Of a DNA stretch of 64,000 nucleotides, positions 45,047-62,112 are shown piece by piece. Positions within the stretch are counted from its first letter, which is position 1. The number at the start of each line of letters is the position of its first letter. The notes under the pieces are model-generated. The model did not search any database and had not been told where the DNA came from. It saw nothing but the letters and a program-made list of their open reading frames with translations. Made by a program: the position numbers and the translations under genes. This stretch comes from Macrostomum lignano (taxonomy: Eukaryota): contig NIVC01000286.1 of NCBI GenBank assembly GCA_002269645.1, positions 314,563 to 378,562 on the forward strand. The letters run 5' to 3'.

Positions 45047-46207
45047 CTAAGTTGAAGGCTTGGACTTGTTGAAGTTTCTGAATTTTTTGTAGAACATCTG
45101 CAAATAGGTAAACACGCACTTCCAGTCAGGGGTTGCCATGGTGACCATGTCTTCTACGTCTAATAGCGGTGCGATGCCGGCGTACTTTCTGGAATATTTG
45201 AAGAATTGACAAGAATAGCTTGCCTTTGAGAGAGAGGGAGTCGGAGAGGTAGAGGGAGAGGGAGAAAGAGGAAGAGGGAGAGGGAGAGGGAGAGGGAGAA
45301 AGAGGAAGAGGGAGAGGGAGAGGGAGAGGGAGAAAGAGATATAGGGAGAGGGAGAGGGAGAGGGAGAAAGAGGAAGAGGGAGTGGGAGAGGGAGAGGGAG
45401 AAGGAGATATAGGGGAGAGGGAGAAGGAGAGGGAGAGAGAGAAAGAGGAAGAGGGAGTGGGAGAGGGAGAGGGAGAGGGAGAGGGAGTGGGAGAGGGAGA
45501 GGGAGTGGGAGAGGAAGAGGGAGGAGAGGAGAGGAGAGAAAGAGAGAGGGAGATGAAGAGGGGGAAAGAGAAGGAGAGGGAGAGGGAGAGGGAGAAGGAG
45601 AAAGGGAGAGGGGAAGGGAGAGGGAGAGGGGGGAGGGAGAGAGGCACCCTCCGAGCTCATGTCTAACTCACTCGGCAGTGTCAAAGGCCAGTTCAAAATT
45701 GCGCTTTCTATTGGCAGCGCTGAGCTCATTAAAATCGAAGGCCTCAGGATGGAAGCTGTGGATGAGGGCACAGAACGCCAGGCCGTCACCCCACGAGCTG
45801 CTCAGGTTGGTCACTTCCACACCCTGCGGGAGAAAATTCTCTATATTAGATTTTCTTACTCTCACTACTTATGCCTTATAGCATAGCACGCGAACATGAT
45901 CAGTAAAACATGCTTAATACTACGAGTAAAAACGCTGGAGTTATTTAAATGCAGGCCATGCCGAAATTAAATAAATACCCATTGCCGATAGGGGGCCGTC
46001 ACAGCCTTGCACCAGTCCAATAGGCACTGTTTGATTGTGGCAGCTGACTGGGTTCGCTTCAGTCCTCGGCCACCCGAGGGCGCCACCGGCTTTGGCTCGG
46101 CACCGGGCTGACCAGAGGCCGCCGTTGCCACCGCGGCAGCTGCCTGCCACTGTTTAACCGCTGCACTGCCGCTTTGAAGCACGGCTGACTGCGAGCGCTT
46201 CAGGGAG
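45047..46207 (-). CDS. Smoothelin-type calponin-homology domain (three exons: 46207-45979, 45823-45672, 45188-45047)
   Basis: [10 protein letters not shown]...[31 protein letters not shown]...[43 protein letters not shown]. Confidence 0.92.
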
Positions 46208-61200: not shown

Positions 61201-62112
61201 GCGGATGATGGGGCGGTTGCCGGGGCGGTTGCCGGGGCGGTTTTGGGGGCTGGTGCGGGGGCGGTTGCCGGGGCGGTTTTGGGGCTGGTGCGGGGGTGGT
61301 TGCCAGGCCGGATGCGGGGGCGGATGCGGGGGCGGATGCGGGGGCGGATGCGGGGGCGGATGCGGGGGCGGATGCGGGGGCGGATGCATCAGCAAGTGGC
61401 TGTTGCTTTCCAGCATCCGGTGCAGACGTCGAAGAGGGTTCAATTTTTTTAACCGGTGCAGCAGCGGACTTGGAAGAGTTGTTTTGCTGCTGCTGCTGCT
61501 GCTGACTGGATGGCCCGTCCAGACGAGAGGAGGTCAGCGAACTCCTGTGAACATTATCAAAGGATTCTCTGGACTTTTATTTGTTTCTGTTGTATTCCTG
61601 CATCCTCTTTATTATTTCGTTAATGGCGGTCTCGCTGTCTCTGTATCCCCCAGTGCATCTGTTTCTATATTTCTATCTTCTTTTTCTTTCTACATTGCTC
61701 CCTGCATTCCTCCTACATTTCTCCCTGGATTCATCCCTGCATTCCTCCCTGCATTCCTCCCTGCATTCCTCCCTAAATTCCTCCCTACATTGCTCTCTGC
61801 TTTCTACCCTACATTCCTCCCTTCAAATCCGAACCTCTGCTGCCGCTGCCTCATCCGCTCGATGGACTCCCTGAGCTGCGAGACTTCGTCTGTGGCGTCC
61901 CCGTTGCTGTCGCCGCTGCCGCCGCCACCGGCTCCAGCATAGCCGTCGCCGCGGCCTCTCAAACCGATTCCGTCAGACAGGCGGTCCGCCACTGTCGCCG
62001 AGGCCATCACCGGGGAGGTCGGGGAGCGCAGGAACGATCGGTCGCGACTGGTCATGCGTCGGATTCGGTCCAGGTGGATGGGCGGCGGGGATCGGACAAA
62101 TCCCTCGTCTGC
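45047..62112 (-). CDS. Large multi-exon smoothelin-like / I-set Ig cytoskeletal protein (5' end not found in window)
   Basis: Hand-built exons: 62112-61835, 61568-61139, 61052-60976, 60150-60020, 58634-58545, 58276-58246, 57714-57572, 57452-57302, 56534-55953, 55707-53889, 53625-53208, 52631-52508, 52416-52227, 50815-50729, 50651-50576, 49391-49174, 48603-48447, 46876-46756, 46207-45979, 45823-45672, 45188-45047. Phases from 58634 down are consistent given one 1-nt fix; the upstream exons are less certain. Confidence 0.8.
45230..45640. repeat. GA-rich low-complexity tract (last intron)
   Basis: Direct observation. Confidence 0.9.
46225..46515. repeat. ~46-bp tandem repeat ending in a short TTAGGG-like run
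   Basis: GCGGAGTGAGGTGGGTGTAGTAAAAGGGGTAGAG units, about six copies. Confidence 0.75.
47280..48296. mobile_element. hAT-type MITE with an internal GGCGCC-core array, inserted in a SINE
   Basis: TIR CAGGGGCGTCGCCA / TGGCGACGCGCCTG; flanks TGCACCGAG and TGCACGAG look like a target-site duplication; interior unit TTTTGGCGCCGCAGGCACTCA. Confidence 0.8.
48650..49160. repeat. GATAAGCAGGGTA / GATAAGCTACTAGGGTA composite minisatellite
   Basis: Fills the intron between exons 49174 and 48603. Confidence 0.85.
49445..50545. repeat. GATTCTGG(G) 8-9 bp minisatellite
   Basis: Fills the intron; direct observation. Confidence 0.92.
50576..50815 (-). CDS. Smoothelin helical domain, copy 2 (two exons)
   Basis: [14 protein letters not shown] / [20 protein letters not shown] matches the smoothelin 'IE.i.D..lL.km L..t.dfeErk.IRa.lr.l' pattern. 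Confidence 0.8.
51430..52100. repeat. 21-bp CT-rich minisatellite (CTCTGTGTCTGTCTTGTCCTT)
   Basis: Direct observation. Confidence 0.92.
52227..56534 (-). CDS. Seven I-set Ig domains and an Ala/Thr/Lys-rich spacer (five exons)
   Basis: Seven F-strand motifs: DMGNY, DGGEY, YSGEY, DSGKY, HAGLY, DSGRY, DEGQY, each with A'/B-strand and Trp-containing C-strand patterns. Confidence 0.88.
52720..53080. repeat. 68-bp minisatellite, ~5 copies
   Basis: Unit spacing 52722 to 52790. Confidence 0.9.
56600..57170. repeat. 16-bp minisatellite (GTCTAACTGGTGAAGT)
   Basis: Direct observation. Confidence 0.92.
58700..59900. repeat. 20-bp minisatellite (CCTGATTCTTGATCCCATTC) with higher-order variants
   Basis: Direct observation. 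Confidence 0.92.
60020..61052 (-). CDS. Smoothelin helical domain, copy 1 (exons 61052-60976 and 60150-60020)
   Basis: [12 protein letters not shown] / [19 protein letters not shown], split at the same phase-0 position as copy 2. Confidence 0.7.
60215..60900. repeat. 23-bp minisatellite (GGGAGGCGCCAATTGAGGTGTCA)
   Basis: Fills the intron splitting smoothelin domain copy 1. Confidence 0.92.

Follow-up and report, generated by a model that had tools for sequence, protein, structure and literature searches.

A likely flatworm member of a spiralian group of Ig-containing long smoothelins in Macrostomum lignano

Can smoothelin helices, a series of immunoglobulin (Ig) domains and a calponin-homology (CH) domain belong to one gene, and what would such a gene make? 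The question is raised by a 64,000-nucleotide stretch of the free-living flatworm Macrostomum lignano (contig NIVC01000286.1, positions 314,563 to 378,562 of the forward strand; hereafter the window, numbered from its first letter), in which a preliminary description made from the sequence alone had placed a smoothelin-Ig hybrid at 45047-62112. Smoothelins serve as markers and modulators of contractile smooth muscle and are, to our knowledge, almost unstudied outside vertebrates; the locus bears on the evolution of smooth-muscle scaffolds. We consider it likely that it is one copy of the long smoothelin gene of M. lignano, the flatworm member of a conserved spiralian group, and that its product is a muscle actin-filament scaffold. 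In this group an array of I-set Ig domains, typically four, lies between N-terminal helices and a canonical C-terminal module composed of a helix, repeats and the CH domain.

The gene, eukaryotic and split into many exons, lies on the minus strand, as seen from stop-to-stop open reading frames (ORFs) and from Pfam scans of single exons, which placed I-set domains in ORFs 56637-55918, 55751-53754, 53625-53149 and 52442-52185, a partial Smoothelin domain in ORF 60207-60019 and a CH domain in ORF 45868-45671. Enumeration of GT-AG junctions under a phase constraint yielded one clearly best exon chain for the 3′ two-thirds of the gene. Its 12 exons, from 55707 to 45047 (Table 1), give 1243 codons with zero stops once joined, with AG/GT at every border. 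In the 1243-aa product, Pfam recognizes I-set domains (1.3e-41, four stretches), a Smoothelin domain (24.5 bits, for a gathering score of 23) and a CH domain (75 bits). With the exons lying further upstream, the layout from the N terminus is a low-complexity region, Smoothelin helix 1, Ig1-2, a spacer, Ig3-7, helix 2, three charged repeats and the CH domain, and the full product would be about 1900 aa long. This domain order is the one already proposed in the preliminary description.

The exons of the window are 99-100% identical to three public M. lignano proteins. P0001 (NCBI BOX15_Mlig001950g5, 1215 aa) is carried by a sister copy of the locus, distinct from the window and 97-99% identical to it (NIVC01000073.1, hereafter L001); it runs from the middle of Ig1 to Ig7, crosses the junction 52227>50815 and continues through helix 2 and the charged repeats into the first CH exon. 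P0002 and P0003 (UniProt, 1538 and 1481 aa) have a longer N terminus and end at ...VEKKPQ(H). A further model, P0008 (379 aa), covers only the part from helix 2 to the end of the CH domain.

The C-terminal module is a canonical smoothelin in its type of CH domain, its PF12510 helix and its 152-nt exon. Over ~95% of its length, the stretch from helix 2 through the three charged repeats to the CH domain is collinear with mollusc and arthropod proteins of 290-430 aa; these carry PF12510 and PF00307, and many bear the name smoothelin-like. The CH domain is single and lies at the extreme C terminus (residues 1129-1234 of the 1243-aa product). Its best matches in the PDB are human smoothelin (2D87, 1.6e-40) and SMTNL1 (2JV9, 2.7e-36), with alpha-actinin behind (7e-29). 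The two smoothelin helices and the smoothelin CH domain first proposed for this gene were thus recovered, helix 1 (26.8 bits) exceeding the gathering score as does helix 2. Furthermore, the penultimate exon, which lies within the CH domain, is exactly 152 nt long, and a penultimate exon of 152 nt has been reported as invariant in vertebrate SMTN, SMTNL1 and SMTNL2 (PMC10643981). The likeness to these vertebrate genes comprises a single C-terminal type-2 CH domain, PF12510 helices and this exon and, for SMTN, a 5′ block of extra exons that gives a long isoform on top of a short C-terminal one (a probable one in M. lignano). In contrast, the long forms of vertebrates and of the other deuterostomes sampled have multiple helices and a CH domain, and no Ig. 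The short invertebrate smoothelin-like proteins (~290-430 aa), among them the stand-alone M. lignano paralogue P0009, share the collinear helix 2, three charged repeats and CH domain but lack the whole 5′ extension.

For the Ig domains we used a hidden Markov model (HMM) built solely from the Ig domains of smoothelin proteins of other species. It gave E-values of 2e-20 for Ig6, 5e-18 for Ig7, 3e-15 for Ig5, 1e-11 for Ig2, 3e-10 for Ig4, 3e-5 for Ig1 and 0.0035 for Ig3. Of the seven I-set domains initially described, five are thus robust, Ig1 is probable, with a moderate E-value, and Ig3 is divergent, with a weak one. Pfam gave no match for Ig3, and a search of the PDB with its sequence returned the Ig domain of MLCK as the sole match, a weak one (E 0.45). 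In a single-sequence AlphaFold prediction of Ig3-Ig4, Ig3 is all-beta but its predicted local distance difference test (pLDDT) score stays below 52, against 65-85 for Ig4. The A/T/K/P-rich spacer reported earlier is present, though somewhat longer (~317 aa, not ~290) and better described as rich in A, S, T, K, P and E. It is disordered (A 16%, S 15%, T 10%, K 9%, P 8.5%, E 7%, V 6%), with a predominance of A, S and T, and its composition is not PEVK-like. A duplicated KRTxIVRET motif lies within it (window 54900-55450, minus strand).

The same architecture exists in other animals. Homologues were found by searches with the proteins P0033 and P0008, an initial search with a query from Ig3 to the end having returned only seven matches, with Ig and low-complexity words saturating the candidate list. 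Domains were assigned by Pfam and by local HMM maps, the latter covering the M. lignano composite and P0228, P0230, P0238, P0241, P0253 and P0129. Two N-terminal helices, four Ig, a helix and the CH domain follow one another in Mizuhopecten yessoensis (2458 aa; OWF42675.1, named 'Smoothelin', and XP_021369460.1, named 'unc-89-like'), and the same order with three N-terminal helices is found in Patella caerulea (KAK6191500.1, 1920 aa) and Owenia fusiformis (CAH1801843.1, 1343 aa). N-terminal helices were not detected in Mytilus galloprovincialis (VDI08897.1, 1618 aa; four Ig, helix and CH), in Octopus sinensis (XP_036369634.1, 1378 aa; two Ig, helix and CH) or in Gigantopelta aegis ('smoothelin-like protein 1', 846 aa; one Ig, helix and CH). 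In addition, two intronless, cDNA-like contigs carry the combination: in L003 (Logan ERR7672905), helix, Ig and CH lie in a complete ORF of 680 aa, and L004 (JGI 3300008998) has an ORF, open at its 5′ end, with at least two Ig followed by helix and CH. The architecture, which the preliminary description did not know as a family, is hence not a one-off. At least six mollusc and annelid species have it in their public predicted proteomes, where automatic annotation has called the proteins 'Smoothelin', 'unc-89-like' and the like; the group is experimentally uncharacterised. Our literature searches found no paper on an Ig-containing smoothelin or on Mlig001950.

M. lignano shares with the long spiralian smoothelins the N-terminal helices (those of Mizuhopecten, Patella and Owenia), the I-set array, the Smoothelin helix and the C-terminal CH domain. 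It differs in that the others have a contiguous block of four, two or one Ig, whereas M. lignano has two, a spacer and five, and in that just one N-terminal helix was detected, unlike in Mizuhopecten, Patella and Owenia. Its module from helix to CH is 35-41% identical to the short smoothelin-like proteins of molluscs and annelids over ~95% of the module; with the long spiralian proteins, coverage varies between the full length of the module and the CH region alone. The M. lignano Ig domains are only 25-32% identical to those of other spiralians. One-to-one orthology with the four-Ig blocks was considered and abandoned, the best matches being scattered. The long forms of hemichordate, starfish, amphioxus, crinoid and sea urchin contain four to six Smoothelin helices and a CH domain, and no Ig, and the dipteran giant forms sampled gave no match to the local Ig HMM. 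Within the sampled species, the Ig array is a spiralian feature. The dipteran proteins (P0237, P0245, P0256 and P0268), of 2000-5400 aa, end in a smoothelin helix and CH and are automatically named 'titin', 'mucin-5AC' or 'futsch'; they are probably misnamed long smoothelin isoforms.

Several points weigh against taking this locus as an intact long smoothelin gene with a role in muscle. The 5′ third is not readable in one frame in the window with the public splice sites. Compared with L001, the window is one G short at ~61110 (CTCGCGG vs CTCGGCGG), which shifts the frame, and one G short again at ~55645 (GGGG vs GGGGG); the G-run 60079-60076 has four G where P0002 and P0003 imply five. The phase-consistent exon chain of the preliminary description, which had overlooked these frame breaks as well as a likely short isoform, therefore holds for 55707>45047 and fails in the 5′ third, where phase is kept only with weak splice sites. 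No single public model extends all the way from helix 1 to the CH domain, and P0001 is a short-read transcript assembly, able to chain isoforms. Ig3 is only a candidate Ig fold, weakly modelled. Function and localisation are those that we infer by analogy with other muscle proteins, and the promoter proposed below for the short isoform is a putative one. Finally, the state at 55645 is also implied by an independent model, P0002, so that the window copy may be genuinely broken and not mis-assembled.

If this were the case, the window would hold a decaying duplicate, in an organism (M. lignano DV1) with large recent duplications: the long ORF would be truly interrupted, leaving only the short C-terminal isoform, or no product at all, to be made from this copy, with the intact long gene residing at a sister locus. 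The one-base deletions at ~61110 and ~55645 relative to L001 speak for such a decay, as does P0002, which implies the 55645 state and needs an 8-nt pseudo-intron (GTCAACAG) to regain frame (it also contains a 5-nt skip, GTGAG). Yet all the differences are single-base changes of length in homopolymers or G-rich runs (~61110, 60079-60076 and ~55645 in the window, 19025-19076 in L001), typical of long-read consensus error. Moreover, the copies are broken at different places, L001 in the A-run near 46765, which is unbroken in the window, they are ~99% identical in exons with very few amino-acid changes, and the two assemblies may share raw reads. The pattern, with a different homopolymer broken in each copy, looks like long-read consensus error, and we regard a decaying duplicate as an unlikely explanation.

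The single-base differences between sister copies lead to three mutually incompatible models (P0001, P0002/P0003 and P0008), and the lesson for annotation is that homopolymer indels have split one gene into three models, none of which has the full architecture. P0001 lacks the CH domain because L001 has seven A near 46765 (six in the window), and the extra A puts what follows the same 46756>46207 splice out of frame; L001 contains the three downstream CH exons as well. Helix 1 is lost in P0002 and P0003 because these models use a weaker, purine-rich acceptor at 60084. When joined as 60976|60150, it is the 26.8-bit Smoothelin domain given above, and this is obtained only with the better-scoring acceptor 60150; we infer that helix 1 is present in the mRNA. 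Attempts to join the 5′ exons ab initio, from GT-AG borders and phase, gave several weak alternatives and was dropped for public-model mapping, and the public models themselves disagree on the borders and reading frame of the small linker exons at 57302..58634. As for the extent of the gene, the last exon reaches 45047, stop codon included, while alignment of P0002 and P0003 by tblastn makes 62112 an internal acceptor (...LNYLH|ADEGFV...) and the Met at 62055 an internal one. The gene starts upstream, outside the window, in which ~140 N-terminal residues of P0002 and P0003 have no counterpart; residues 1-119 had no match in the extra 2.2 kb of L001 either.

The junction between Ig7 and helix 2 determines if the Ig and smoothelin parts form one protein. 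The donor at 52226 is a consensus GTAAGT right after the end of Ig7 (...VEKKPQH), and the acceptor TTTTGCAG before 50815 is strong, the intron being in phase 0; if it were retained, translation would meet an in-frame TGA at 52184-52182 after 14 further residues. Junction and stop codon were found exactly at the positions first proposed. P0001 uses this junction on the sister copy. The Mlig_3_7 annotation consists of RNA-seq transcript assemblies (StringTie/TACO plus de novo) that were divided wherever trans-splice or poly(A) sites had been mapped (PMC5730564), and because it is built from RNA-seq assemblies, the coding sequence (CDS) of P0001 crossing from Ig7 to helix 2 is transcript-level evidence, from short reads. 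The earlier claim that the Ig part and the smoothelin/CH part would belong to one gene is supported by this model, which spans the junction, and by the orthologues and the two cDNA-like contigs, which carry both parts in one ORF.

The opposite view is that of two genes in one transcriptional unit, in which an Ig-only protein would end at TGA 52184-52182 after intron retention or polyadenylation, a separate short smoothelin-like protein would start at ATG 50794 through spliced-leader trans-splicing at 50815 or an intronic promoter, and the fused model would be an assembly artefact or a rare read-through. M. lignano indeed has many trans-spliced mRNAs, and ~7% of its assembled transcripts are multi-gene precursors (PMC5730564). 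P0008 stands alone and covers helix 2 through the CH domain, neither P0002 nor P0003 goes beyond Ig7, Met 50794 is conserved with the start of P0009, and a TATA-like box lies at 50924-50911. Most of this evidence is, however, compatible with a fusion, since a short isoform can coexist with a long one. Against two genes stand the consensus donor, which directly follows Ig7 and is paired in phase 0 with a strong acceptor; a pipeline that cuts at trans-splice and poly(A) sites and nonetheless retained one CDS across the junction; the lack of an AATAAA poly(A) signal within ~770 nt after the TGA; and the occurrence of Ig, helix and CH in one ORF in other spiralians and, uninterrupted, of Ig and CH in the cDNA-like contigs. 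We consequently give little credence to separate genes and retain a single long smoothelin gene.

A second, short product of canonical type, ~385 aa long and starting at ATG 50794, is probably made from this locus as well. This ATG is eight codons past the 50815 acceptor and aligns with the start Met of P0009 (BOX15_Mlig001580g2, 360 aa), the stand-alone paralogue, which is 55% identical to the C-terminal module and lies at 10001-16406 of NIVC01000845.1 (L002). P0009 has eight coding exons, the first two of which match the two helix 2 exons of the window, and no Ig exons were found within 10 kb upstream of it. Some 120 nt before ATG 50794 lies a TATA-like sequence, GCATATAAAAGGCC, which is also conserved in L001 and is similar to GGCATAAAAATCC, located ~95 nt upstream of the ATG of P0009. 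From 50860, P0008 reads through the 50815 acceptor, which is what one would expect of an unspliced 5′ leader. The short form would thus originate from an intronic promoter or, alternatively, from spliced-leader trans-splicing at 50815. Vertebrate SMTN offers a parallel to the proposed short and long pair: SMTN-A has a first exon of its own, and SMTN-B is extended at the 5′ side by 11 exons (PMC10643981). The Octopus gene LOC115224761 has one isoform of 1378 aa that includes Ig domains and another of 303 aa.

What the long isoform might do can be approached by analogy. In palladin, kettin and MLCK, intracellular I-set domains are binding sites for actin or for other partners in the sarcomere. 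The C-terminal module would dock on the actin/tropomyosin filaments of the smooth-type muscle of flatworms, as in vertebrate smoothelins, and the intracellular I-set domains could supply further binding sites for filaments or partners, as in palladin, kettin and MLCK, which would make the long isoform a thin-filament scaffold or cross-linker. This is the most economical reading of function that the analogies suggest, muscle expression and actin binding being presumed. The muscle role put forward at the outset is plausible. In Schistosoma japonicum, smoothelin serves to mark muscle clusters (PMC13355927), and scallop catch muscle is enriched in a smoothelin-like protein at the mRNA and protein level (PMC5963113). 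Palladin, myotilin, kettin and MLCK, together with titin and UNC-89, resemble the M. lignano protein in having cytoplasmic I-set domains joined by disordered segments and differ from it in being themselves without CH domain or Smoothelin helices; the M. lignano protein, for its part, has no kinase, no Fn3 and no long Ig/Fn super-repeats. Membership in titin, obscurin-UNC-89 or twitchin was rejected, Pfam finding only Ig-type, Smoothelin and CH domains and no Fn3, kinase or PEVK segment.

A titin-like elastic linker, anchored on actin by the CH domain and with the spacer as a PEVK-type entropic spring between Ig segments, as the preliminary description had imagined, finds some encouragement in the splitting of the tandem I-set array by a disordered spacer of ~317 aa, but with only seven Ig in ~1900 aa, no Fn3, kinase or PEVK-type repeats, the spacer composition given above and an uninterrupted four-Ig block in the orthologues (so that the split array is not conserved), we consider it very unlikely.

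Among the species sampled, the Ig block is found in the long isoforms of flatworm, molluscs and annelid and is absent from those of deuterostomes and Diptera, which points to a lineage-specific design of thin-filament scaffold in smooth or catch-type muscles. In a bolder version, about which our doubts slightly outweigh our confidence, the insertion of I-set domains into a long smoothelin would be an ancient, spiralian-wide innovation (molluscs, annelids and flatworms), described in no paper and defining a distinct class of thin-filament scaffold of smooth and catch muscle, of which M. lignano would have an expanded seven-Ig version with a nested short isoform driven from the intron before helix 2. 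M. lignano, amenable to transgenesis and RNA interference, is a tractable system for testing the contribution of the Ig array.

Table 1. Exons and domains of the probable long smoothelin gene, and the repeat arrays in its introns (window coordinates)
Feature	Position	Strand	Basis
Low-complexity N-terminal region, internal coding exon (ADEGFV...RQRQQR)	61835..62112	-	tblastn of P0002/P0003
Smoothelin helix 1, first half; donor GTGAGT after 60976	60976..61184	-	Pfam, model mapping
Smoothelin helix 1, second half	60020..60150	-	Pfam across 60976|60150, acceptor scores
Low-complexity linker exons, two or three (58634-~58545, 57744-~57535, 57454-57302)	57302..58634	-	tblastn of P0002/P0003, junction enumeration
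Ig1 (weak) and Ig2 (I-set); public-model donor after 55953	55954..56544	-	Pfam I-set 8.5e-15, two stretches
Chain exons 1-6	55707-53889, 53625-53208, 52631-52508, 52416-52227, 50815-50729, 50651-50576	-	junction enumeration
Chain exons 7-12	49391-49174, 48603-48447, 46876-46756, 46207-45979, 45823-45672, 45188-45047	-	junction enumeration
Large exon: spacer, then Ig3 (divergent), Ig4 and first half of Ig5	53889..55707	-	Pfam, HMM, tblastn
Second half of Ig5 and all of Ig6	53208..53625	-	Pfam I-set 1.5e-19
Ig7, two exons (52631-52508, 52416-52227), ending ...VEKKPQH, then GTAAGT donor	52227..52631	-	Pfam, HMM
1411-nt intron between Ig part and smoothelin part	50816..52226	-	junction
Smoothelin helix 2, two exons (50815-50729, 50651-50576)	50576..50815	-	Pfam Smoothelin 24.5 bits
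Three charged alpha-helical repeats, two exons (49391-49174, 48603-48447)	48447..49391	-	alignment with short invertebrate smoothelin-like proteins
Linker and start of CH, two exons (46876-46756, 46207-45979)	45979..46876	-	mapping of P0008 and P0001
Last two CH exons: 45823-45672 (152 nt) and 45188-45047 including stop	45047..45823	-	Pfam CH 75 bits
Intron repeat, (TGTC)n x282	62196-63320		
Intron repeat, 23-bp x31	60207-60911		
Intron repeat, 20-bp x46	58869-59782		
Intron repeat, 16/52-bp	56603-57216		
Intron repeat, 68-bp x5.5	52716-53087		
Intron repeat (minisatellite in the Ig7-helix 2 intron), 22-bp x31	51422-52099		
Intron repeat, 8-bp ATTCTGGG x133	49442-50547		
Intron repeat, 32-bp x16	48652-49162		
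Intron repeat, 21-bp x38	47394-48167		
Intron repeat, 46-bp x5.7	46229-46491		
Intron repeat, GAGGGA x69	45228-45641		

Nearly every intron of the gene (window 45228-63320) is filled by a different mini- or microsatellite array (Table 1), and because of these arrays many long spurious ORFs appear on both strands. Elsewhere in the window, a multi-exon C2H2 zinc-finger gene occupies 2680-8082 on the minus strand, with Pfam zf-C2H2/zf-H2C2_2 matches in ORFs 2680-3375 and 7432-8082; between them, ORF 4401-6320 encodes a long proline-rich repeat (PPQRIR/PENPP). Exons of a Cys-loop neurotransmitter-gated ion-channel gene lie at 40778-42663 on the plus strand: ORF 42082-42663 matches Neur_chan_LBD and Neur_chan_memb, and ORF 40778-41371, which has no Pfam match, resembles a signal peptide and N-terminal exon. 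More long tandem-repeat blocks, with repetitive ORFs open in several frames, are found at 18935-19561, 22203-24392, 27659-28772, 30331-32657, 34607-35131 and 38536-39310. The largest outside the smoothelin gene is that at 30331-32657 (~2.3 kb), and strong swings in GC skew at 30-34 kb coincide with the tandem-repeat blocks located there.

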